Shown: piece by piece, positions 1,760 through 30,792 of the stretch
How the letters are laid out: every line of letters begins with the position of its first letter
Position numbering within the stretch: position 1 is the first letter of the stretch
Source: Octopus bimaculoides
Taxonomy: Eukaryota
Assembly (NCBI RefSeq): GCF_001194135.2
Contig: NC_068986.1
Coordinates: 81,263,875 to 81,302,421, forward strand
DNA: 38,547 bases
Direction of reading: 5' to 3'
Notes under the pieces: model-generated
Seen by the model: only the letters and a program-made list of their open reading frames with translations
Databases searched by the model: none
Told to the model about the DNA's origin: nothing
Made by a program: the position numbers and the translations under genes

Positions 1760-1824
<65 letters not shown>
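1711..1824. repeat. Compound trinucleotide microsatellite (AAC/ATC/GTT/ATT)
   Basis: Read directly from the sequence. Confidence 0.95.
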
Positions 1825-1827
<3 letters not shown>

Positions 1828-1911
1828 TAGTTTTATTTTTATAACGTGCTTTCACTTCACTACCGAGCGCAACTCTGTGTGCCTTGGGTATATGCTGTGG
1901 TTTGCTGTGAT
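1825..1911 (-). mobile_element. 3' end of R4/Dong-like RLE retrotransposon, (AAT)n family; the rest lies in the gap
   Basis: Near-identical to 2440-2526 (CAGTAGTTTTATTTTTATAACGTGCTTTCACTTCACTACCGAGCG...) and abuts (TTA)n. Confidence 0.8.
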
Positions 1912-2172
1912 NNNNNNNNNNNNNNNNNNNNNNNNNNNNNNNNNNNNNNNNNNNNNNNNNNNNNNNNNNNNNNNNNNNNNNNNNNNNNNNNNNNNNNNNN
2001 NNNNNNNNNNNNNNNNNNNNNNNNNNNNNNNNNNNNNNNNNNNNNNNNNNNNNNNNNNNNNNNNNNNNNNNNNNNNNNNNNNNNNNNNNNNNNNNNNNNN
2101 NNNNNNNNNNNNNNNNNNNNNNNNNNNNNNNNNNNNNNNNNNNNNNNNNNNNNNNNNNNNNNNNNNNNNNNN

Positions 2173-2210
<38 letters not shown>

Positions 2211-2212
<2 letters not shown>

Positions 2213-2439
2213 GGCGACTAGCTGGCTGAATCGTTTGCATGCATGGCAAGATGTTTAGCCATATTTCGTCCGTCCTTATGTTCTGAGTTCAAATTCCGCC
2301 GAGGTCGACTTTTCCTATCATCCTTTCGGGGTCGATAAATTAAGTACCAGTGACTGGAGGTCAATGTAATCGACAATTCCCCTCCCTCCAAAAAATTTCA
2401 GGCCCTGTTCCTTTAGTAGAAAGGATTATTATTATTATT
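2211..2439 (+). mobile_element. SINE family B with (ATT)n tail, flanked by (TTA)n on both sides
   Basis: AAGGCG..AGCTGG head, B-box-like GAGTTCAAATTCC, GCCGAGGTCGAC...CATCCTTTCGGGGTCGATAAATTAAGTACCAG core; shared with copies at 6995, 9545, 16272, 30437, 32503 and 32861. Confidence 0.85.
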
Positions 2440-3288
2440 CAGTAGTTTTATTTTTATAACGTGCTTTCACTTCACTACCGAGCGTAGCTCTGTGTGCCTT
2501 GGGTATGTGCTACGGTTTGCTGTGATGTTCTTATGGTTACTGAAAGTGTTTTGCGTAGGATGTGTGCAGTGCCCAGTAGTGCAATTTTCTGTATGTTATA
2601 TATACTTGTAAGTCCTGGTGTTTTTTTGTTATGTATTTGTCTGAATTTTTTTTTTATCTTACCTAATGCACCTACTATGATAGGAATTGTTTCTGTTTTT
2701 AGATTCCACATTCGAGTTACCTCTATTTCTAGGTCTTTGTATTTTGAAAGTTTCTCCATTTCTGTTTGTCTTATCTTCAACATCCCTATGAAATTGTCCT
2801 TATCCTCAAGTCCTTGTACAGTGCTTTATCTTTGTAATCTGCCATCCTACACAAGCCTGACCTTCTTACTTCCATTAATTGCGGTTCTGTGGCATTTTTA
2901 CATGCCATACTATGTTGTTTTCTTCTGCTTTAATGCTGTGTTCGCATCCAATCAGTCCTCTTCCCCTCTATTTCTTGGTACATGCAGTTTGTCTGTATCA
3001 CTTTTTGGGCGGAATATCCTAAGTCTAGTCAGCAACTTTGTCTTTTTGTCTAAGCTGCTTAGTTCGTCTATTGTTCATACGATTACCCCTGCTCCATATC
3101 TAAGGAGTGAAACCACCCAGGTATTGATAACTTCAATCTTATTCTGTCCGTTTAATTTCGACATAAGCATCAGTCTGCGCAAGTACCTCCGACACTCGCA
3201 CAGCATTATTTTAAGCTTCATTTGTTTTTGGATAGATTTCGGATCAGTGTTTAATCACTCTCACATGTTAAACGTTCCCGGTGTTCTT

Positions 3289-3290
<2 letters not shown>
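2440..3290 (-). mobile_element. R4/Dong-like non-LTR retrotransposon fragment (post-RT thumb fused to RLE C-terminus), decayed
   Basis: Minus-strand translation gives SKLNGQNKIEVINTWVVSLLRYGAGVI...SDTDKLHVPRNRG/RGLIGCE (thumb region), then EKLSKYKDLEIEVTRMWNLKTETIPIIVGALG...IQKIALLGTAHILRKTL (RLE end typical of the R4/Dong clade). Stops and frameshifts present; (TTA)n on both flanks. Confidence 0.85.
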
Positions 3291-3368
<78 letters not shown>

Positions 3369-3420
3369 GTTATTATTATTATTATNNNNNNNNNNTCATC
3401 ATTATTATTATTATTATTAC

Positions 3421-3490
<70 letters not shown>

Positions 3491-3550: not shown

Positions 3551-3922
3551 ACAGTGGCTACATTGTAAGAAGTTTGTTTCCCAATTACAAGGTTCCAGAT
3601 TCAGTCCCACTCCGTGGTACTTTGAGCAGGTACCTTCCACTATAACTCTGGGCCAACCAAAGCTTTGTGAGATTTGCTAGATAGAAACTGAAAGAAGCCC
3701 GTCGTGCGTGTGTGTGAGTGCGTGTGTTTGTCCAATACCACCGCTTAACAACAGGTGTTGGTTTGTTTTGGTCCCTGTGACTTAGCGATTCGGCAAAAAG
3801 ATACCGATAGAATAAATACCAGGCTTTAAAAATATAACTACTGAGGTCGATTCTTCCGACTAAATCTCTTTAAGGCGGTGCACCAATATGGCTGCTGTGA
3901 AATGACTAAAACAAGTAAAAAA
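3551..3922 (+). mobile_element. SINE family A, diverged full-length copy
   Basis: B-box-like GATTCAGTCCC, GAAACTGAAAGAAGCCCGTCG, CTTAGCGATTCGGCAAAAAGATACCGATAGAATAA and AAATGACTAAAACAAGTAAAA. Confidence 0.8.
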
Positions 3923-6994: not shown

Positions 6995-7104
6995 ATCGTA
7001 ACCCCAACTGATCGACCCCAGTACGCAACTGGTACTTAATTTATCGACCCCGAAAGGATGAAAGGCAAAGTCGACCTTGGCGGAATTCGAACTTAGAACG
7101 TAAA
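6995..7104 (-). mobile_element. SINE family B core fragment
   Basis: ACTGGTACTTAATTTATCGACCCCGAAAGGATGAAAGGCAAAGTCGACC is the reverse complement of the B core. Confidence 0.85.
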
Positions 7105-7915: not shown

Positions 7916-8379
7916 CTGAATAATACGAACGAAAAGTATAATATTTTAAAGGGGCGATGAATATTTTGTATCCATTAAATATAGTACTAGCCTCTTTCAA
8001 TGTATCAGATCCCCGCTTTTCACAATTTTTACTCTGTGATCCCCTTCAAATATGTTAAGACCTAGAAAAAAAAAACCATGATTGATTTAGTTGTTTTTGA
8101 CTGCGTAATCCTAAAAGAAAATTACTAGTTTTGCTCTCCCTCGTTGTATTAATTAAACACACATTTATGTACGTATGTGCTTACAGTGTTGGTGGGTGTA
8201 CTTATGAATAGACGAGTGTGTACGCGTATATTTATGTATGCATGTGTTAAATAGAAGTAATTGCTTGTGGGCCTTATCTGTCAATCAATTATTGTTTTAT
8301 TTACATATCTTATCTATAGAATAATCTCTGTGTACATGAATTTATCTCTCTCCCTTCTCTCTCTTATATCTATCTGTAT

Positions 8380-8490
8380 ATCTATTAATCTATCTGCCAA
8401 TCTTTTCGAAATTTTATCTATGCACCCATCCATTTATCTACTTACCAATCCATCCGACCAACTATCTATCTCTGTCTATCTATCAATTTG

Positions 8491-8549
<59 letters not shown>

Positions 8550-8610
8550 CTATCTATCAATTTGTCTATCTATCAATTTGTCTATCTATCTATTTATCTA
8601 TCTATCTGTC

Positions 8611-8680
<70 letters not shown>

Positions 8681-8800
8681 CACACACACACACACACACT
8701 AAAAGAAGAAAGTAGAAGATATATATGTATAAAAATTTATATATATATATATACACACACACACATATATATATACATGTATATATATATACTTACCCAT
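8380..8800. repeat. Compound microsatellite (CTAT)n/(AT)n/(GT)n/(CA)n
   Basis: Read directly; source of the SIYL/YLSI ORFs. Confidence 0.95.
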
Positions 8801-9314
8801 CAATCTTGCGATCCATCTATCTCTCTCTTTATATATCTATATCTACCTCTGTGTATATGTGTGGTGTGTCCGTATGTTTGTGTGTATGCGTGTGTATGTA
8901 AGCATGTATGTATGGTTGTGTGTATGTATGTCCGCACGAACTATCTATCTTTGGGCATGGACATCAAACAAAGAAAAAGCCCATAAACCGTTATCCAGTT
9001 ATTCTGAGCTGATATAACTCCACAACAAAACACAAAAAGAATACAATTCGACTATAAACAACAGCAAACAATATTGGTTATAATACGGTGAGGGGTAGTA
9101 TGAATGAGAGATGCGTGGGGTGCCCAGTACCCTTGTAAAAAAGACCTAGGATCAGTGTTATCCTATGTTCTGAATATTTCGGTGTTAATATGTTAAGTAG
9201 GTTGAACCAGTGCAGTTTCCTTATTTCCCGGGTTACCGCAACTATTGTTAGCTTTGATCTTTAAGCCAGTGTCTTAGTGGTCGTCTTTTTGGTCGCTAAA
9301 TAGATTGGCCTTAC

Positions 9315-9457
9315 CGTTGCTGTTGTTGTAGTTGGGGTTTTTGTTGTAGTTGGGGTTTTTGTTGTGGTAGTGGTAGTGGTGGTTGTTATGGTACTTGTGG
9401 TTGTTATTGTAGTGTAGGTGATATTGTTGTTGTTGTTTGTTGTTGTTTGTTGTTGCC

Positions 9458-9488
<31 letters not shown>

Positions 9489-9497
9489 TTGTTGTTG
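9315..9497. repeat. Compound (GTT)n/(GTG)n/(GCT)n microsatellite
   Basis: Read directly; source of the poly-Q/poly-T ORF. Confidence 0.9.
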
Positions 9498-9544
9498 CTC
9501 TATTTCCGTTATTATTGCAAATTCTACATACTCGTCATCTTCGC

Positions 9545-9730
9545 GGACAACATGCTCAGCGGCATTTCTTCCGGCTTTTCTGTTCAAATTTTCTGAGTTC
9601 AAATCCCGCCGAGGTCGACTTTGCCTTTCCTCCTTTCGGGATCGATAAAACAAATTACCTGTTAATGTAATCAGCTAACCCCCTCCGCACAAAATTTTCA
9701 TCCCTTGTTGCTATATTACAGAAAAGGGTT
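9545..9730 (+). mobile_element. SINE family B, diverged
   Basis: CTGAGTTCAAATCCCGCCGAGGTCGACTTTGCCTTTCCTCCTTTCGGGATCGATAAAA. Confidence 0.8.
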
Positions 9731-9991
9731 ATTGATCTCTCTTATTTAACAAATGATGTTCAGTCAGAAAATAGCACTCCCCCGTCTTAAATACTGACAC
9801 CAACAGCCCACCGCAAAAGTACTTTCTCGTTAAAAGAATTTCCTTCACGCAGTCAAGATAGCATATGTTGTGATTTAGATCTCGATAATCTCACTCCTCA
9901 ACACTCGATAATCCTTTCCTGATATCCAATATACACACAGAACGGATAGTCACCTCTCTCTCTCTCACTCACTTACTCACTCTCTCTCTCT

Positions 9992-10032
<41 letters not shown>

Positions 10033-10289
10033 ACACTTATACACACACACACACACACACACAACCATACCTCATCTCTCTATTCCTCCCTTTCTCTCTC
10101 TCACACACACACATACCTCCTCTCTCTCTTTCTTCGTCTCTCTTTTCCTCTTACACATACACGCATGCATAAACACGCCCACACAATCATACTCATACAC
10201 ACTTACACATATGCTTATACACACATACACAAACACCCTCCCAGTATGGTACGTTGAATGTCATATCAGTTCTGACCACAAGTGTTCAA

Positions 10290-10490
10290 ATAATTCAGTC
10301 AACGGAACTGCATATTCATTCCATTGTACATAAGTGGCTGAGTATTCCTCACATTATGTGATATACAGCATAACAAACTGATTGATATGCTGTGTTACAT
10401 ACTGTATGATATTCTACTTGACATGGTGTGTGACAACATAATACGTGTCATGCTACGTGACAAGGTTAACCCTCTAAATAAAGCTACAAT
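10290..10490 (-). mobile_element. Degenerate SINE family D body
   Basis: AAGTGGCTGAGTATTC and GTGACAAGGTTAACCCTCTAAATAAAGCTACA resemble a recalled cephalopod SINE body; weakly similar (inverted) to 20580-20740. Confidence 0.4.
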
Positions 10491-12272
10491 CCATCATACG
10501 GGCTTCCACACAGTTTCTGTCCCTCACTGAAGTGGTTGAATAGACCTCGTATCTTTGACGTAATTATATGCAAAAATCAACGTATAATTTTATGAGTAAA
10601 ACCTGGTTCTCCGAATTACAGAAACTGTCCATGCAACGGGATTCCATATACCAACCCCATTTTCCTTAGAAGACGTGCGGCCCAATTTTCCTTAGAAGAT
10701 TTGCGTCACTCGCCCAAGATGCTACGCAGTGGAATCATAACGCAAGGCCGTATGATTGTGAAGCGAACATTTCATTCATGAGGTAATGCCTACATCAGAC
10801 ACGTAGAGCCTGGGAAGGCCTGCGAAGCCATATGTATAGCCTAGCCTTCCAGACTATACCAATAAATGACATACTGCGTTCTCAAACACACTTAAATACG
10901 CATCTTGATAATACTAAAACTCTAGGGGTATTTATCTGTACCCGAAATATCTCAAAAATAGTATATTTTATCTTAATTTGTTTCGCATATTTATTTTCAT
11001 ACTTACCTTCGGCAGTACTGTACAAATTTTTGTGACATTTGGATCTCTATTTATTAATGTAAACGAGTAAACACAATTTTTGTTAGCTATTTCTTGACGA
11101 GAAAAAAAAACATAGCTTCTGTGACTTCAACACATACACATATGCAGAATACACACACATATAATGAATGTCATGGCGTGTCAATCAACACAAACACACA
11201 TCCGCTATATGTGACATATATACAGACATAGTCTTCGCCATCTAAGAAAACAACGTCGACTTTTTGACGTACACTATATTTTAATCATTTAGAAATATTT
11301 TTAACTGAATGTGATTTCAAAAATGTAAATTTTTTGTACAGTAGATATTTATATTTTAGCTTTCTGTAAACAGACAATATTTTAATGTTCTTTTTTTAAA
11401 TTATTTTTAAGTCGTTAATTTCCGTAAAAAAAAAATGTTATTTATTTACAATTTGTTTTAAATTGAAAGAGAGGAGAAAGTGAACGATGTATGTTCGTGT
11501 ATATGAAATGGACGTGTGTGTTTGTGAAAGAGAGAGAGAGAGAGANNNNNNNNNNNNNNNNNNNNNNNNNNNNNNNNNNNNNNNNNNNNNNNNNNNNNNN
11601 NNNNNNNNNNNNNNNNNNNNNNNNNNNNNNNNNNNNNNNNNNNNNNNNNNNNNNNNNNNNNNNNNNNNNNNNNNNNNNNNNNNNNNNNNNNNNNNNNNNN
11701 NNNNNNNNNNNNNNNNNNNNNNNNNNNNNNNNNNNNNNNNNNNNNNNNNNNNNNNNNNNNNNNNNNNNNNNNNNNNNNNNNNNNNNNNNNNNNNNNNNNN
11801 NNNNNNNNNNNNNNNNNNNNNNNNNNNNNNNNNNNNNNNNNNNNNNNNNNNNNNNNNNNNNNNNNNNNNNNNNNNNNNNNNNNNNNNNNNNNNNNNNNNN
11901 NNNNNNNNNNNNNNNNNNNNNNNNNNNNNNNNNNNNNNNNNNNNNNNNNNNNNNNNNNNNNNNNNNNNNNNNNNNNNNNNNNNNNNNNNNNNNNNNNNNN
12001 NNNNNNNNNNNNNNNNNNNNNNNNNNNNNNNNNNNNNNNNNNNNNNNNNNNNNNNNNNNNNNNNNNNNNNNNNNNNNNNNNNNNNNNNNNNNNNNNNNNN
12101 NNNNNNNNNNNNNNNNNNNNNNNNNNNNNNNNNNNNNNNNNNNNNNNNNNNNNNNNNNNNNNNAAATTAACGAAGAAAACCAGCTGGTACGGATGACAGT
12201 TCTGAGAGTCAAAGCGAAAGATCGCCCCAAGGAAATACCATTACAAAAATTTTTTGGACATATCTCAGCTCC

Positions 12273-16271: not shown

Positions 16272-16492
16272 TTACTGACTTCAAATTTTGGCACAAGGCC
16301 AGCAAGTTCGGGAGATGAGGCTAGTCGATTACATTGATTCCAGCACTCAACTGGTACTTATTTTATCGACCCCGAAAGGATGAAAGGCAAAGTCGACCAC
16401 GGCGGAATTTGAACTCGGAACGTAAAGAGGGACGAAATGCCGCTTAGCATTTTTTGCCCGGCGTGCTAACGATTCGACCAGTTTCTTGCCTT
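16272..16492 (-). mobile_element. SINE family B, full length, inserted in the RTE RT
   Basis: Complete head-to-tail reverse-complement match to family B; RT homology on both sides. Confidence 0.85.
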
Positions 16493-16504
16493 AATCTTAA
16501 TATT

Positions 16505-16790
16505 AACGGTGGATAATCCCCGATGGCTATCGCACACCTGTCTATCTCTTTGCAGAGGCCAATGATAATAACGTTGTCTGAAATGTTGCGGATCGACCTC
16601 TTCTATTCACAACTGTCTGAAAAATAAAACGAGTTCTACCATGAGTGTGTCTCAACCATACTTGTAACTCCTGGTCGGATACTAACCTCACAGATTCTTT
16701 CCCACGATAAAGTTCCTTAATCTTCTCAGGTGTTTCTGTAGTCATTGGGTTTCTGTCAAATCATCAGACTCTGGAATATTTCCTTGATTG
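16505..16790 (-). pseudogene. RTE-clade LINE reverse transcriptase fragment (upstream part)
   Basis: Minus-strand VDPQHFR...DRQVCDSHRGLS matches the RTE VPQDFRDA...GDRSVCDNHRGISLL region, collinear with 15940-16250. Confidence 0.65.
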
Positions 16791-18290: not shown

Positions 18291-18520
18291 AAGAAACTAG
18301 CTTCCCAACCACATGTTCCGGGTTCAGTCCCACTGTGTGGCACTGCCGATCAAAGCCTTGTCTGTGATTTGGTAGACGTCCCCGTAACTTAGCGGTTCGG
18401 CAAAAAGAGACCGATAGAATAAGTACTAAGCTTATAAAGAATAAGTCCTGGGATCGATTTGTTTGACTAAAGACGGTGCTCCAGCATGGCCGCAGTCAAA
18501 TGACTGAAACAAAGAAAAGG
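18291..18520 (+). mobile_element. SINE family A with two internal deletions
   Basis: Head with GGGTTCAGTCCC; GATTTGGTAGACG joins directly to TCCCCGTAACTTAGCGG, so the central microsatellite segment is missing. Confidence 0.85.
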
Positions 18521-19080: not shown

Positions 19081-19475
19081 TACTCTTTTACTTGTTTCAG
19101 TCATTTGGCTACGGCCATGCTGGAGCACCGCCTTTAGTCGAGCAAATCGACCCCAGGACTTATTCTTTGTAAGCCTAGTACTTATTCTATCGGTCTCTTT
19201 TGCCGAACCGCTAAGTTACGGGGACGTAAACACACCAGCATCGGTTGTCAAGCGATGTTGGGGGGACAAACACATACGCACAAACATATATATATATATA
19301 TACATATATACGACGGGTTTCTTTCAGTTTCCGTCTATCAAATCCACTCACAAGGCTTTGGTCAGCCTGAGGCTATAGTCGAAGACACTTGCCCAAGGTG
19401 CCACGCAGTGGGACTGAACCCGGAACCATGTGGTTGGTAAGCAAGCTACTTACCACACAGCCACTCCTGCGCCTA
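19081..19475 (-). mobile_element. SINE family A, near-intact reference copy
   Basis: Minus strand starts TAGGCGCAGGAGTGGCTGTGTGG (A box)...GGGTTCAGTCCC (B box), has a central (CA/TA)n, and ends ...GAAACAAGTAAAAGAGTA. Confidence 0.92.
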
Positions 19476-21082: not shown

Positions 21083-21949
21083 GAAATATGATTAATGTAA
21101 TGTAAAATAAAGCTGAAGTGAATTAATACCAAATATATAGTGCGTTTGTTTTTATTGGCTAAACTGGCAACATGACCATCCCCANNNNNNNNNNNNNNNN
21201 NNNNNNNNNNNNNNNNNNNNNNNNNNNNNNNNNNNNNNNNNNNNNNNNNNNNNNNNNNNNNNNNNNNNNNNNNNNNNNNNNNNNNNNNNNNNNNNNNNNN
21301 NNNNNNNNNNNNNNNNNNNNNNNNNNNNNNNNNNNNNNNNNNNNNNNNNNNNNNNNNNNNNNNNNNNNNNNNNNNNNNNNNNNNNNNNNNNNNNNNNNNN
21401 NNNNNNNNNNNNNNNNNNNNNNNNNNNNNNNTATATATATATAGTTTTCTGCAGCTGCTGAATTTGTTGTGTATATGAACAGATTGGGTGTTTTTTTCTC
21501 TGGGGTTGGGTTGGGCTGGTCAATCTAGGTGTGATTATGTAACCTATATAGTTGATACATAAACAGAAATTTTAATTACTTTTCTGTGTAGCTGGGATTT
21601 ATTTAACTTTTCTTTACTATGCAGGAAGCAAGCTGGTCGCTAGGAATGCAGCATGGCTCTTTTATTTAGAGTAAGACAGTTCTTGAGGTTTGTGGTTAAC
21701 TGAACTGGTTGATGTATGCATACATGTGTGTGTGTCGTGCATATGCTCGTGCTTCATAAACTTACACTCCTGGTTGTGCGTTTTACAATGGAACACAAGT
21801 GTATGTGTGTATGTGTGTGTGTGCGCGCGCGTGTGTGTGTGTGTGTGTGTTTCATTACTGCTTATGCGTGTGTGCTTGTACATACCATATATAGGAGTGA
21901 TTGTGTGCATATGGTGATCCACTGACCTTAAATGAAGAATCCCTGAAAT

Positions 21950-22640
21950 GTGTATTTCGAGAATGAGAATCAGTCTGTTCTGTTCTTTTTCAAAGAACTC
22001 AAGCAACTGTAGTCTTTTTACACATTTCGGTTGTTACGTAACCAATGCACCTAGGATAATAAGAAAGAATGAAAATCTATAGCTTGGATTTAAGAGCTAC
22101 GAAGTTCTTATAAGTTTTCCATATATGTTCTCCCTTTCCCCAGTTTTTGGTGAAACATTCATATCCTCCGAGTAGTTGATTTCTAATACGGTGCCCGACT
22201 TTTGCTCCCAGCTCCATACAACAACATCTATCCTGTTGTACTTGCAGCGGGTTGCTGTTTTTATTGAAACTATTCTATACTTTTAAAGGTGTGGATAATG
22301 TTTGGTTCTTGTGTGCCTTTTGCAGAAAAGACAATCCTTTCTACTTACACTGTCTTGTAGACTGTCTTGGCGACAATGTGATGTCTCGTGAAAAGGTAGA
22401 ATTTCACGGATACTTTTGAAAAGATGTGAATAATATAAGTGATATCTTCCACACTGGTATGGTACAATCGACATTTTCTGTCACAACGTAGAAGTCAAGA
22501 AGCATCTTTATCTCTCTTATTGATCAGGTATTTTGTTGCTGTCTCCTGTTCTTGGATAGCAAAGAAACTGTAGCCTTTCTAAGGTGAGATGTTCTTATCG
22601 TACGTCCAGAGGGGCTACTATTCGTGTCAATGCTGTTGCA
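21950..22640 (-). mobile_element. R4/Dong-like RLE retrotransposon fragment, (CATA)n family, strongly decayed
   Basis: Minus strand: IQEQETATKYLINKRDKD...RKCRLYHTSVEDITYII...IKTATRCKYNRIDVVVW...ENIYGKL (CCHC knuckle plus RLE region), collinear with 22915-23672; the 5' truncation abuts (TATG)n. Confidence 0.7.
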
Positions 22641-22643
22641 AAG

Positions 22644-22674
<31 letters not shown>

Positions 22675-22914
22675 TGTATGTACGTACGAATGTATGTATG
22701 TGTGTATGTATGTCATTATTCAGTTTGATTTCAAGATTTCTTGCCAATAGAGAAAAAGCAAGTTTCTAACCTAAGCCCAAGGCTCCTTCATTGGAACTTC
22801 AACATTAACTGGGTATGTATGTATGTATGTATGTACGTATGCATGTATGTTTGTATGTATGTATGTTTGTATGTATGTATGTGTAGATTTGTATGTTTTA
22901 TGTATGTATTTTCA

Positions 22915-23672
22915 TACATATAGTTGCATATCTAGACTTGTTCATATATATTTAAGTGATGAGCTTCTGGAAAGTTTTACAGATTTTTACAGTTACAGTG
23001 ATGGATTAGATCTGTAGTCTTCGAATTAGCTTTCTCCTTTCTGCTTTTGAGAAGCCTAATTTGGTATTTAGGTAGTGTGTTACATATCACAGGGCCCCAA
23101 TAATTACAGGTATAAACCTGAACTTGTAATCTGGATAGAGTAACTATAGATTTCTCAATAGTTCAGCATAGGTGTTCTCTTTTTCACTGATCTTCAGCTT
23201 TTATGTTAACATCCGCCTGGCTGCTAATTTCCACAACTGTACACAGTTTCTTTTCTCTATCCCAAATCGTTATATCAGGTCTGTTGTGCTTACATTTTAT
23301 TGAGGTCTTCACTGGTACATTCCACCAGTATTCCTTTTTATTATGAGTGTCTATGGCTTCTACCATATAGAGGGTTCTTCTTTCTTTGTCCTCGGGATTA
23401 TCCTTCTGATGGATTTCATTATAGAGTGTCTTAGCTACAACGTCATGTCTTATCGGTAGATAATACCATGATGACATTTTCGGACAACTGCTTATGATAT
23501 GGGTAATATCTTCAGTGTGTACTCCACAAAATCAATCTGCATCGGCTTTTCCTGCATTTCTATCTTCTATCCCTTTTGTGCATCAGGTATTTGGCTGATA
23601 TTTCCTGTTCCAAGATTGCAAACGCATACCCTTCAAAGTGGGAGGTAGTAATCCATGATAACTGCTTTGATG
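22915..23672 (-). mobile_element. R4/Dong-like RLE retrotransposon 3' portion, (CATA)n family
   Basis: FEGYAFAILEQEISAKYL...EDITHIISSCPKMSSWYYLPIRHDVVAKTLY...WWNVPVKTSIKCKHNRPDITIWDREKKLCTVVEIS...KENTYAEL...FIPVIIGAL...TVKICKTF: zinc knuckle, RHD and PD-(D/E)xK RLE motifs; (TATG)n on both sides. Confidence 0.88.
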
Positions 23673-23674
23673 AT

Positions 23675-23960
23675 GTATGTATGTATGTATGTATGTATGT
23701 ATGTATTTATGTATGTATGTATGTATGTATGTATGTATGTATGTATGTACGTATGTATGTATGTATTTATGTATGTGTGTATGCATGTATGTATGTATGT
23801 ATGTATGTATGTATGCATGCATGCATGCATGTATGTATGTATCGCTGGCAGGCTGGCAGGCTGGTAGGCTGGCTGGCAGGATAGATAGATGGATAGCTGG
23901 TTGGATGAATGGATGGATGGATGGATGGATGGATGGATGGATGGATGGATGGATGCTTAT
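23675..23960. repeat. (TATG)n / (GGCT)n / (GGAT)n compound microsatellite
   Basis: Read directly from the sequence. Confidence 0.95.
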
Positions 23961-24253
23961 ATGTATTTATGAATGGATGGGTGTGTGGGCGGCTGTATAG
24001 AAACTCATTTACAAATGCTCTCACACATATATATATATATACGAGTGTATGTTTCCGTATGTTTTTAATCGTTTACAATACGGTAAGGTCAGAAGGGAAT
24101 CATTAATCTGTAAAGCAACAATTACTAAAAAAGAGGATGAAAGGTGGAAGAAAAGGAGGAGGAAGAGTAACACTATAGTCATAACTGTTGTCATATCCCC
24201 TACTGTTGGCATTAACATGCTGTGTATTCCTCTGATAAATGTTGTCTCATAAC

Positions 24254-24720
24254 ATACACCACCACCACCACCACCACCACCAATACCAATACCACCATCA
24301 TCACCACCACCACCAACACTGCCATCACCACCACCACCGCCGCCGCCACCNNNNNNNNNNNNNNNNNNNNNNNNNNNNNNNNNNNNNNNNNNNNNNNNNN
24401 NNNNNNNNNNNNNNNNNNNNNNNNNNNNNNNNNNNNNNNNNNNNNNNNNNNNNNNNNNNNNNNNNNNNNNNNNNNNNNNNNNNNNNNNNNNNNNNNNNNN
24501 NNNNNNNNNCACCACCACCGCCGTCGCCGCAGCCAGCACCACCACCACCACCACCACCGCTGCTGCTGTCACCTCCACCATCAAGGTCAATAACACTGCT
24601 GCTATCACTTCTCCAACCGACACCACTACGGCTATCAATTCCAATCCCACTCCACTGCTACCACCACTGTCCATCATACTACTATCACCGCCACCGCCAC
24701 AACCACCACCCTCTACCACC
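24254..24720. repeat. (CAC)n-based degenerate trinucleotide tract spanning a gap
   Basis: Read directly; source of the poly-His/Thr/Pro/Gly ORFs. Confidence 0.85.
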
Positions 24721-25151
24721 AATGCCGCTCTATAGTCACCATGGTAATCATGTTTAGTATTGACTTTTTGAGTTTTCATTTTCAAAATAAGATTGTGTAT
24801 GTGCGTGTGCATGTGCACGTGTGTATGTGTGTGTATGTTGTGTGTATGTGTGTTTGTGTGAGTGTGTGTGTGTGTGTGTGTGAGTGTGTGCGTGCGTGTG
24901 AGTGTGCGTGTGTTTATTACATGCTACGTCTGAATGAGGTGGCAGCGCCCATGGCTTTCGCAGGTTCACCGGCACCGGTGAGATTGATGCCTGGTTAATA
25001 TATTAGATGAGTGAAACGGACGGCCTCTCCGTAGAGGCTACTTCCTGTCAAAATAACACATACACACAACACAACACGCCCGCCCGCCCATGCACGCACG
25101 CGCACACACGCGCGCACAACACATACATACATACATACATACATACATATC

Positions 25152-25280
25152 CAATCAATCAATGGAACTGTAAAAATCTGTAAGACTTTCCAGAAGTTTA
25201 TCATTTAAATACATATGAGCATATCTAGTTATGCAAATGTATGCACGAGAATACATACAAAAAACATACATATCTGCACT
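25152..25280 (+). mobile_element. Short 3' end of the (CATA)n-family RLE retrotransposon
   Basis: ACTGTAAAAATCTGTAAGACTTTCCAGAAG...TCA.TTAAATA.ATATGA.CA..TCTAG.TATGCAA is the reverse complement of about 22920-22995; (TACA)n on both sides. Confidence 0.85.
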
Positions 25281-25597
25281 ACATACATACATACATACAT
25301 ACATACATACATACATACATACATACATACATACATACATACACACACACACATACATACATACTTACATACATACGTACATACATACATACATACATAC
25401 ATACATACATACACACATACATACATACATACATACATACATACATACATACATACATACACACACACACATACATACATACATACATACATCCACACAT
25501 ACACACATACATATATACATACATACACACATACATACATACTTACATACATACGTACATACATACATACATACATACATACATACATAATACATGC

Positions 25598-25628
<31 letters not shown>
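25281..25628. repeat. (TACA)n microsatellite, about 350 bp
   Basis: Read directly from the sequence. Confidence 0.95.
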
Positions 25629-26110
25629 GGAGGAACCTAGTTTCAATGTGGGTAGCCTACAAGAAAGCTTTTGACTCTGTTCCCCACTCATGGATGCTAG
25701 AAGTCCTTCAACTTGCTGAAGTTCCAGTGAGCATAATCAAAGCCATAGCTGACCTGACTTCATCGTGGGCCACTATCTTGAAATTAAAACACAAAGAGTG
25801 ATTGCATTATCACTGATAAAATACAGTACCGCCAAGGCCAAGTATTATCATAGATAAAATACAGTACCGCAAAAGTACCAAGTGAACAACCTCTCTGTGA
25901 TGTTTATACTTTCTGTATACTCCTTGTAATTCATATTAAGGAAATCTGAAGGATATCTCACTGGTTCACAAGGAAACTGGAATACCAAAATTACACACAG
26001 AGTCAGTACTCATACCAACATTTGGGCTGCTTGACTGGATGCTTGATGAGATCCGAGCCAGTGATGTAAAAACCTGAAAAATACTAACAAGCACACATAA
26101 TTTCCACATA
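25629..26110 (+). pseudogene. R4/Dong-like reverse transcriptase fragment, 5'-joined to (TACA)n
   Basis: RRNLVSMWVAYKKAFDSVPHSWMLEVLQLAEVP (DYxKAFDSVPH motif), followed by decayed later RT/thumb segments (FGLLDWMLDEIRASDVKT*KILTSTHNFH). I could not find the YxDD block. Confidence 0.8.
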
Positions 26111-26395
26111 AACAGTGTCGTACCTAAAACGTACCTGTTTTCGTATACATTCGTTTACTTTCTTCCAAGGAGTCTAGTGCTCTTAGCTTAGATTATCTTG
26201 GGGACGGCCAGATTGGAGCAGTCTCGAGTGTAACCGGTCGAAACTGCAAAGATGATCTGGAACTCGACTGAAGATAGGAAGCTCCGAATGACCCGTCCTT
26301 GTTTTTCCTGTCCTTTTTTGCATCGTCTAACTGTCCGGATGTTTTGTTATCGCTTGTTACGTTCTTGTTCCATTTTTTTGCTTTCTACATATATT

Positions 26396-26429
<34 letters not shown>

Positions 26430-26569
26430 NNNNNNNNNNNNNNNNNNNNNNNNNNNNNNNNNNNNNNNNNNNNNNNNNNNNNNNNNNNNNNNNNNNNNNN
26501 NNNNNNNNNNNNNNNNNNNNNNNNNNNNNNNNNNNNNNNNNNNNNNNNNNNNNNNNNNNNNNNNNNNNN

Positions 26570-27112: not shown

Positions 27113-27710
27113 GTAAGATATACAGAATGGTATATGTGTGTGTACATATATTCATATGTTTACGCATGTATGTGTGTGTGCGTATATGTGTGTGTGTGTA
27201 TGTCTGTGTCTGTATCTATGTCTTTGTGTGTCTGTGTGTGTGCCTGTCTGTATGCATGTATTATATATCTATTTATTTATATAGTTCAATTAAATTATTA
27301 TACTGTTTGTACACAGTAATGGAAACTCTGTTTTCATAAAATTTACAGCTTTCATGTTCGCTCAGCAAGCTTTATTATTCCATCAGTGATTTGACTTCTA
27401 GGTGTGAAGTATTTGTTACCAATTATGGCGCTTTTATGTTATTTTTATTGCATATGATGCAGCAGACATTATCTCTAGAGCTGTGTGTACACTGTACCGT
27501 GGTTTGTGATTTCCCTGAAGGTTATTTCATCCATGCCCATATTTAATGTACATCTGATTTAAGTAATACGATTTATATACTTTAACTACGAATGACAAAA
27601 TCGAAAAGGTGAAAACTGAGCAGAGCTGTGTTTTTAATCTAACGCGTTTTTAAAATCATTTCTATTAAACAGATCTGCTATTTCAGATGTTTCCACTGAG
27701 ATTCTTTTGT

Positions 27711-28101
27711 CTTTTACTTGCTTCCGTCATCAGGCTGCGCCCATGCTGGGGCACCACCTTGAAGAATTTTTAGTCAAGTGAATCGACCCCAGTTCTTATT
27801 TTTGATAAGCCTGATACTTATTCTATCGGTCTCTTTTCTGCCGAACCGCTAAGTTACGGGGACGAGAACACACCAACGCCGGTTGTCAAGCGGTGGTGCG
27901 GGACAAACGCAGACACAAGGAAACCCACTCATATGTGCGTGTGTGTGTGTGCGCGCGTGCGCGCGCGCGTGTGTGTGTGTACATAAATACATATGAAAGA
28001 CGGGCTTATTTCAGTTTTAAGTCTACCACATCCACTCACTAGGCTTTGCACAAGTTGCATGCCGTGGGACCGAACCTGGAACCATGTGGTTGGGAAGCAT
28101 G
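27711..28101 (-). mobile_element. SINE family A
   Basis: TACTTATTCTATCGGTCTCTTTTCTGCCGAACCGCTAAGTTACGGGGACG and GGGACCGAACCTGGAACCATGTGGTTGG match 19081-19475; central (GT)n(GC)n. Confidence 0.85.
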
Positions 28102-30436: not shown

Positions 30437-30640
30437 AGCTGACAGAATCCTTAACACGACGGAAAATGCTTAGCGGCATTTCGTCCGTCTTTACATTCTG
30501 AGTTCAAATTTCTCCGAGATGGATTTTGCCTTTCATCCTTTCGTGGGTCGATAAAATAAGTATCAGTCAACTACTGGGATCGATATAATTGAATTACCTC
30601 TCCCTCGAAATTGCTAGACTTGTGCCAAAATATGAAACCG

Positions 30641-30686
<46 letters not shown>
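30437..30686 (+). mobile_element. SINE family B with (ATT)n tail
   Basis: AAATGCTTAGCGGCATTTCGTCCGTC...CTGAGTTCAAATT...GTCGATAAAATAAGTATCAG...CCAAAATATGAAACC followed by (ATT)n. Confidence 0.85.
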
Positions 30687-30687
<1 letters not shown>

Positions 30688-30692
30688 TGATG

Positions 30693-30792
30693 AAAGGTGG
30701 CGAGCTGGGAGAATCGTTACCGCACCGGACAAAATGCTTAGCGGCATTTCTTCCGGCTTTACGTTCTAAGTTCAAATTCCGCCGAGGTCGAC
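30693..30792 (+). mobile_element. SINE family B 5' half, 3'-truncated, directly after the previous copy's tail
   Basis: AAGGTGGCGAGCTGGGAGAATCGTTACCGCACCGG...GTTCAAATTCCGCCGAGGTCGAC, then unrelated sequence. Confidence 0.85.

Follow-up and report, generated by a model that had tools for sequence, protein, structure and literature searches.

Relics of a Dong/R4-like retrotransposon lineage in Octopus bimaculoides and its probable directional integration into (CATA)n microsatellites

Background

The locus described here raises the question of whether a simple repeat that adjoins a group of decayed retrotransposon copies was the site into which these copies integrated, or a tail that they made themselves. 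The copies, designated A to D, lie within positions 21851-26135 of a stretch of Octopus bimaculoides DNA (NCBI RefSeq assembly GCF_001194135.2, contig NC_068986.1, positions 81,263,875 to 81,302,421 of the forward strand), which was analysed over its full length of 38,547 nucleotides and is referred to below as the window. They are pieces of retrotransposons of the non-LTR type (without long terminal repeats) that code for a restriction-like endonuclease (RLE), and the repeat reads (CATA)n in the sense of the element. The explanation favoured here, with a probability of about 0.78, is that they are relics of at least two subfamilies of a Dong/R4-like, RLE-bearing lineage with one open reading frame (ORF), which integrates directionally into (CATA)n by target-primed reverse transcription (TPRT).

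Junctions of the octopus copies with (CATA)n

Element pieces were delimited by six-frame translation, tblastn searches with 125 relatives and frameshift-aware stitching. The four pieces reported by an earlier, sequence-only reading of the window were thereby recovered with refined limits, and the region 21851-26135 was found to contain four, perhaps five, independent decayed RLE non-LTR pieces. All four window pieces are retrotransposon-derived and, since they are full of stops and frameshifts, are dead.

The 5' truncation points of A to D (4 of 4) abut (CATA)n in element sense, and do so at four different positions of the element. With a slash marking the junction, they read ...CATACATACATA/TCTTTGCAAC in A, ...ACATACATACAT/CATCAAAGCAG in B, ...CATACATACATA/TCCAATCAATC in C and ...CATACATACATA/GGAGGAACC in D, which upholds both the direct joining of every truncation point to a tetranucleotide tract and the constant (CATA)n reading of that tract on the sense strand, as first noted from the letters of the window. 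On the 3' side, the ends of B (...ATCTACAC/ATACATACATAC) and C (...ATCTGCAC/TACATACATAC) were likewise said to run into the repeat, and both do so from a terminus that they share in alignment.

The upstream tracts were located by combining a tandem-repeat scan (TRF) with direct reading of the junctions. They comprise a (CATA)n tract at 22645-22712 (minus strand) directly before the truncation point of A, a second one of about 42 units in element sense at 23673-23842 (minus strand) directly before that of B, and a perfect (ACAT)7 at 25121-25149 (plus strand) directly before copy C. An imperfect (CATA)n tract at 22813-22880 (minus strand), lying after the 3' end of B, represents either a tail or the downstream half of a target, and a (TACA)n tract some 350 bp long and interrupted by (CA)n, at 25280-25628 (plus strand), is at once the tail or downstream target of C and the 5' flank of D.

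As a chance baseline, a perfect (CATA)3 stands immediately upstream of 0.78% of window position-strands. Under random placement, the probability of four such junctions out of four is ~3.7e-9, and it rises to ~6e-5 if B and C alone are counted as independent; this conservative value takes account of the position of A in the tail of B or the neighbouring 100-bp island (described below) and of D in that of C.

Copy B (22881-23675, minus strand) is 5'-truncated and extends through the CCHC motif and the RPD...E...D endonuclease core to the C-terminus; its stop codon occupies 22952-22954, and its 3' untranslated region (UTR) of 71 nt ends in ...ATCTACAC. It is broken by two frameshifts and several in-frame stops, and its conserved endonuclease columns read HTEDITHIISSC...RPDITIW...VEIS..ADVN in the protein alignment (A1). 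In the homologue search it was 75% identical to the protein P0001 and 66% to O. bimaculoides LOC106878562; the latter, annotated as a protein, represents part of a retrotransposon, not a gene of the host. Copy C (25150-25279, plus strand) is a 130-bp copy of the 3' end: the final 16 codons lead to a stop at 25206-25208, after which comes the 3' UTR ending in ...ATCTGCAC. This copy is set between the (ACAT)7 upstream and the (TACA)n downstream. Copy C is 83% identical to B up to one common 3' terminus, ...AAAACATACAWATCTRCAC (...ATCTRCAC), after which (CATA)n begins. The 3' end of B, earlier placed at about 22915, was consequently moved to 22881.

Copy A (21851-22644, minus strand) is also 5'-truncated and runs from the CCHC motif through the RLE to the C-terminus; the stop codon is found at 21928-21930, and the UTR, 77 nt in length, ends in ...GTAATGAA. 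Its amino-acid identity with B is 40%, and at the DNA level the two align at 75% identity over just 61 bp; A and B belong to different subfamilies. Between them lies an island of 100 bp (22713-22812, minus strand) with (CATA)n on both sides. The suggestion that it is the true end of the 3' UTR of B was discarded, because C, whose terminus is that of B, passes straight into (TACA)n without the island, which is therefore a separate insert and not part of B. Its 3' end (...AATAATGA/CATAC) resembles those of the related locus L004 (...TTAATGAA/CATAC) and of copy A (...GTAATGAA). The local alignment score of 51 exceeds those of shuffled sequences (mean 24.6, maximum 39), and part of it is carried by the repeat; with low confidence, the island may be a UTR-only copy of another, third family.

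Copy D (25625 to about 26135, plus strand) is 3'-truncated and consists of reverse transcriptase (RT) motifs, corresponding to residues ~580-692 of the related element L008, joined to the post-RT linker (~807-860): the sequence ...KKAFDSVPHSW... is followed by an internal deletion of ~115 codons and then by the linker ...VLIPTFGLLDW.... Over 50 aa, its RT stretch ...WVAYKKAFDSVPHSW... shares 60% identity with P0024, and the end of D matches the O. bimaculoides locus L001 at 94% identity. At the deletion (window 25998-26003), D loses upstream homology at nearly the same element position as the octopus-family locus L003 (283-310 and 114-140), just before ...GTCAGTASTCATACCAACATTTGGGCTGC, and L003 additionally carries an inverted duplicate of the start at ...GTCAGTASTCATACCAACATTTGGGCTGC; the position before ...GTCAGTASTCATACCAACATTTGGGCTGC may be a recombination-prone spot or may mark a derived subfamily.

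Flanking repeats of related elements

The octopus family is nearly absent from the protein collection, where it is represented by P0001, P0002 and P0124 only, and its other loci are rearranged or too short, so that relatives were used for the question of target or tail. P0002 is LOC106878562, its locus L001 comes from GCA_001194135.2, and the window pieces are closest to Octopus bimaculoides; loci L001 to L003 are short or rearranged, which makes their flanks uninformative. When metagenome contigs were scanned for exact occurrences of the B/C 3' end, 0 matches were obtained, and a scan of such contigs for relatives returned 19 loci.

Complete single-ORF elements were found at L008 (4.5 kb, 1213 aa) and L015 (3.9 kb, 1134 aa), each on a contig that starts and ends in sense (CATA)n. 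The P0024/P0026 family contributed four copies, L025 to L028, from two ENA assemblies (ERZ25878469, with megabase contigs, and ERZ25067561, with a 266-kb contig). Sense (CATA)n is present on both sides of all four; L027 is near full length, the 5' ends of L025, L026, L027 and L028 correspond to L008 residues ~484, 858, 18 and 157, respectively, and the tracts flanking L028 reach ~0.7 kb (5') and ~1.1 kb (3'). An upstream element common to L025-L028, sought as a possible source of their 5' tracts, was not found. L025 has a 20-bp target-site duplication, ACATACATACATATATATTT, of which the last 7 nt are unique flank; since the duplication reaches into unique DNA, the repeat was present at the target before insertion. 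Taking window copies A-D, L008, L015 and L025-L028 together, orientation relative to (CATA)n is constant in 10 of 10.

Other relatives are flanked by other repeats. Both ends of L009 carry (CTTA)n; L014 is flanked by (TACT)n on its 5' side and L020 by (ACTT)n on its 3' side, the 3' UTRs of these two being near-identical; an (ACTT)n tract lies upstream of L006, and (CTTA)n tracts lie downstream of L010, L011 and L016. L022 ends in (AAT)n, L029 (Hydractinia) is an internal fragment without flanking repeat, and the boundaries of L005 are ambiguous owing to another LINE (long interspersed nuclear element) with an (ACTT)n tail upstream. Judged from these flanks, (ACTT)n is a second tetranucleotide target type among these related elements. 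In every lineage, the flanking repeat is the element's own 3'-terminal repeat, be it (CATA)n, (ACTT)n or (TAA)n.

A neighbour-joining tree was computed from 261 C-terminal columns. Copy B groups with L008, P0015 (the protein of L004) and P0001 at a bootstrap of 100, and P0015 is its closest intact relative by C-terminal identity (62%). The P0024/P0026 family falls near this clade without bootstrap support, and L015 constitutes a distant second (CATA)n lineage, nearer to the (ACTT)n and (TAA)n types. The (ACTT)n/(CTTA)n-flanked relatives (L005, L006, L009, L010, L011, L014, L016 and L020) occupy two separate branches. The (TAA)n-flanked relatives fall in one alignable group with the window elements, and C-terminal identity to the (TAA)n-type relatives found is 23-28%. 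The distribution of (CATA)n, (ACTT)n and (TAA)n flanks indicates that the microsatellite target has evidently switched within this element group.

Domain content and classification

The assignment of the pieces to RLE-type non-LTR elements, already made from their translations, was corroborated by RT, CCHC and PD-(D/E)xK motifs and by the R2 proteins as nearest structures. Pfam searches with the raw window pieces gave sub-threshold matches only; in full-length relatives, RVT_1 was detected at 1e-25 and 6e-24, together with a weak zf-RVT match. For the RT region, the nearest solved structures by sequence are R2 proteins (PDB 9nl2, 9dou and 8gh6; E 1e-21 to 1e-15). Invariant or near-invariant columns of alignment A1 comprise C..C...H....C, RHD, NRPD, E(IS), (A)D(V)N and K, and a single CCHC motif lies upstream of the RLE in all full-length relatives. 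One ORF of 1134-1213 aa is present in each of L006, L008, L009, L014 and L015; the window copies are devoid of the 5' parts. In the full-length relatives no Exo_endo_phos (apurinic/apyrimidinic-type endonuclease) match was obtained, the endonuclease being the C-terminal RLE, and their first 450 residues contain no C2H2 pattern.

All full-length relatives share the N-terminal motif R.NR....W.Y.L..D.....(G)[YF]..R.K..WD..HP......L..Q. Comparison of this motif with Pfam and PDB (HMMER) and with c-Myb R2R3 (hhalign) yielded nothing significant; it may be a diverged Myb/SANT-like domain of the kind reported for R4/Dong (PMC7998251). A self-cleaving 5' ribozyme resembling that of hepatitis delta virus (HDV) has been reported for Dong and R4 (PMC3774820). 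At the 5' ends examined here, a Rfam search at E<=1 for this hard-to-detect class returned only spurious mir-297 matches on the repeat, and a crude nested-helix descriptor for an HDV-like ribozyme gave no matches above shuffles.

By architecture, single ORF and microsatellite insertion, the lineage is likely Dong/R4-like, and placement in HERO rather than R4/Dong is possible (PMC4640811). Dong-R4 is by far the most abundant class of RLE LINE among the recently active insertions annotated in Octopus vulgaris (PMC13282606).

Proposed integration cycle and alternative explanations

Under the favoured explanation, the element RNA would end in a short UTR followed by (CAUA)n, and the element protein would nick a (CATA)n tract on its (TATG)n strand, which is the strand presumed to be cut first. 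The freed DNA 3' end would anneal to the (CAUA)n tail of the RNA and prime cDNA synthesis; reverse transcription would often halt early, giving 5'-truncated copies, and the cDNA end would be joined to the upstream half of the target tract. Such a cycle would leave (CATA)n on both sides of each copy in its own sense, and older copies could receive new ones in their tails, as B or the island would have received A, and C would have received D. The sequence-only reading had stated that the family cuts (CATA)n. Insertion into such tracts is borne out by the repeats on both sides of L008, L015 and L025-L028 and by the target-site duplication of L025; that the cut is made by the endonuclease itself is what we infer. 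Specificity could reside in the protein (the RLE together with an N-terminal DNA-binding region) or, with equal possibility, in annealing of the RNA tail to the target.

Several observations weigh against directional (CATA)n integration as a general rule for this lineage, or limit what can be drawn from the window. Informative flanks are available for only four octopus-family copies in two clusters, effectively two independent target tracts. The 3' UTR of A runs into a (CA)n/CG-rich tract (21799-21850, minus strand), with CATA only scattered in and beyond it and not into clean (CATA)n, so that only the 5' side of A supports the pattern. At L001, both ends of the O. bimaculoides copy (~9905-10866) are without a microsatellite; the copy is probably rearranged, because it is truncated at both ends and sits in a zinc-finger gene array. 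The boundary of the L003 copy carries an inverted duplication, the inverted repeat being judged by eye. In L004, a member of the same clade as B, ACATACATAC precedes (AGAC)n. Copies differ in the phase of their 5' junction within the repeat, and no fixed second-strand cut site is therefore evident. Finally, the N-terminal motif follows phylogeny, the (CATA)n-type L027 being nearer to the (ACTT)n-type L006 and L009 than to the (CATA)n-type L008, which argues against this motif alone encoding the target.

Three of these points are accompanied by separate observations. Immediately upstream of the L001 copy, a tandem C2H2 zinc-finger repeat array with an 84-bp period occupies 8117-9900. In L004 (983-1028), the end ...TTAATGAA is followed by CATACATAC and then (AGAC)n; this is a compound repeat or else represents another variant of the target. 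A fixed phase '...CATA/' at the 5' junction was considered as a sign of a defined second-strand cut and was rejected, as L026 and L028 show '...CATAC/' and the break in L025 falls outside the repeat.

A reading in which insertion is near-random, each copy makes its own (CATA)n tail by stuttering of the RT, and the 5' tracts are simply the tails of neighbours, has precedents in the self-generated microsatellite tails of many LINEs and of short interspersed nuclear elements (SINEs) (PMC3812793). It would account for the upstream tracts of A and D, which double as the downstream tracts of B or the island and of C, as well as for the L001 copy without flanking repeat. It does not account for the tracts upstream of B and C, before which no recognisable element 3' end was found, and it would need two improbable exact landings in neighbours' tails; moreover, upstream (CATA)n is present in 4 of 4 copies of the related family and at L008 and L015, and the L025 duplication with its unique flank shows that a repeat pre-existed at the target. 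Because orientation is constant over ten copies and because of the L025 duplication, this model was rejected for the lineage and is regarded as very improbable. Even harder to credit is the notion that fragments collected passively in a region rich in microsatellites, low in recombination or poorly assembled, and were mis-joined to collapsed repeats in a gapped short-read assembly. The 135 TRF rows and the N gaps in or beside repeats (24351-24509, 26430-26569 and 1912-2172) would suit it, and the Drosophila elements Waldo-A/B near CA repeats have been read as passive accumulation (PMC3812793). Set against this are the exact junctions at differing element positions in one constant orientation, the (TAA)n, (AC)n, (GGAT)n and (CAC)n tracts of the window that the (CATA)n-flanked family left unused, and the equal architecture of the related family on multi-megabase ENA contigs.

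Another possibility is a variant of the favoured explanation more than an exclusive alternative to it. Nicking would be loose, and reverse transcription would start only where the nicked DNA can pair with the (CAUA)n tail of the RNA, so that the apparent target would be set by the tail and would switch when the tail mutates. The identity of the flanking repeat with the element's own 3'-end repeat in every lineage is what such pairing would produce; the contrast between the (CATA)n flanks of the P0024 family and the (ACTT)n flanks of L006 and L009, despite a very similar N-terminal motif, also fits, as does the L025 top-strand break outside the repeat. R2, the best-studied RLE element, however, uses protein-DNA recognition by its N-terminal domains, according to work cited in PMC7998251, and tail pairing as the determinant of the target is considered unlikely, while far from negligible. 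Since the flanking repeat equals the element's own terminal repeat and the N-terminal motif tracks phylogeny and not target, the RNA tail may, as these comparisons suggest, matter as much as the protein for the address.

A broader generalisation is held only tentatively, at somewhat less than even odds. It would make the elements members of a Dong-like clade, widespread among animals, that has been repeatedly re-targeted, to (TAA)n, to (CATA)n at least twice, to (ACTT)n at least twice and perhaps to (ACAG)n, the target being in each case the element's own 3' repeat; a change of tail would suffice for a switch, and the elements would lengthen their target tracts. Close relatives that differ in their simple-repeat target would offer a compact system for separating the protein from RNA-tail/target pairing as the address. 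If directional integration into (CATA)n is correct, part of the microsatellite load of cephalopods would be tied to Dong-R4, among the most active LINE groups, and junctions between element and repeat would be biological features and not assembly noise. If the tail sets the address, the elements would both consume and produce tetranucleotide microsatellites in octopus and other invertebrates; tracts of 0.35-1.1 kb flank C/D and L028.

Other features of the window

The TRF scan of the whole window (135 rows) describes a microsatellite-rich, repeat-rich animal sequence. About 63% of its CATA tract bases adjoin pieces A-D, and about a third of the tract length does not. Two of the other tracts (35583-35614 and 38090-38133) belong to an abundant SINE-like repeat, in which they form the variable internal microsatellite, and are for this reason independent of the RLE elements; beside the remaining CATA tracts of the window, tblastn with the relatives revealed no RLE or RT homology. 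The proposal that the element helps to explain the abundance of TACA/TATG tracts thus applies to the 63% share and not to the SINE-internal tracts or to those lying apart from RLE or RT homology.

Directly upstream of the (CATA)n tract of B, a compound array of (GCTGGCAG)n and then (GGAT)n extends over 23844-23955, from which it follows that the RLE copies sit in a larger block of juxtaposed microsatellites. An assembly gap (N run, 24351-24509) interrupts an imperfect (CAC)n/(GCC)n array, which is present on either side of it. The gap lies outside every piece, ~510 bp from the upstream tract of B and ~610 bp from that of C, and touches neither the element pieces nor the reading frames of interest; the adjacency of the minus-strand cluster (A and B) and the plus-strand cluster (C and D) rests on this scaffold join.

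Two copies of a different RLE family, with P0118/P0119 as best match, are present at 1763-3490 (minus strand). Their 3' ends, at ~2440 and ~1826, share ...GTTATAAAAATAAAACTACTG followed by (AAT)n, equivalent to (TAA)n, and the longer copy also has upstream (AAT)n at 3291-3490. This family shows canonical Dong-type (TAA)n behaviour, as published (PMC3812793, PMC7998251), and constitutes a control in the same window; assembly gaps (1912-2172 and 3386-3395) occur in or beside its (AAT)n tracts. A tRNA-derived SINE at 2212-2425 (plus strand) is set between (ATT)n tracts which, in SINE sense, are the complement of the Dong-type (TAA)n. Relatives of this SINE were found at 7011-7104, 9544-9733, 16280-16506, 30437-30792, 32502-32700 and 32904-33061, several of them with TTA/TAT tracts. 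The abundant SINE-like repeat mentioned above occurs at 244-563, 3723-3920, 18376-18519, 19084-19304, 27710-27980, 35584-35850 and 37817-38133, and its internal, highly variable ACA-rich microsatellite differs between copies, being (AC)n, (ACAT)n or (AT)n.

Comparison with known systems

Site-specific RLE retrotransposons serve as the model for TPRT, and R2 and its kin are under engineering for gene insertion (PMC13586686, PMC13580325). The targets given in the literature are (TAA)n for Dong in insects, molluscs, cnidarians and an ostracod, ribosomal DNA (rDNA) for R4, (TG)n for Togen and (ACAY)n for Waldo, which has an apurinic/apyrimidinic-type endonuclease. The sequence-only reading knew of no described (CATA)n-specific family, and this agrees with the searchable literature, in which no report of a (CATA)n- or (ACTT)n-specific RLE family was found; Repbase and Dfam lie beyond that search, and a prior annotation there is possible. 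Any such record of a (CATA)n target would reduce the finding to a correct annotation.

A close likeness is to the R4-clade elements Dong (Bombyx mori), DongAg, DongBg and Darwinula Dong1/2, which share the single ORF, central RT, CCHC motif and C-terminal RLE and the absence of N-terminal zinc fingers, and which insert in an orientation-specific manner into a microsatellite that also forms their 3' tail, with 5' truncation being common (PMC3812793, PMC7998251). They differ in their target, (TAA)n, which is that of Dong in most insects, molluscs and cnidarians (PMC7998251), whereas the window lineage is associated with the tetranucleotide (CATA)n. Families related to HERO/NeSL are also RLE-bearing and in some cases microsatellite-specific, e.g. 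Togen with (TG)n (PMC4640811), but their reported targets are other than (CATA)n. The order RT-CCHC-RLE, integration by TPRT and the closest solved structures are shared with R2, which differs by its N-terminal zinc-finger and Myb domains and its unique 28S rDNA target, as opposed to a microsatellite and the lack of N-terminal C2H2 in the full-length relatives examined here. A match in target is provided by the R1-clade Waldo elements (WaldoAg1/2 and WaldoFs1), whose (ACAY)n targets, as quoted in PMC3812793 from Kojima & Fujiwara 2003, include (ACAT)n, which is equivalent to (CATA)n; as Waldo belongs to a distant clade with an N-terminal apurinic/apyrimidinic-type endonuclease in place of the C-terminal RLE of the window lineage, any overlap in target is convergent.

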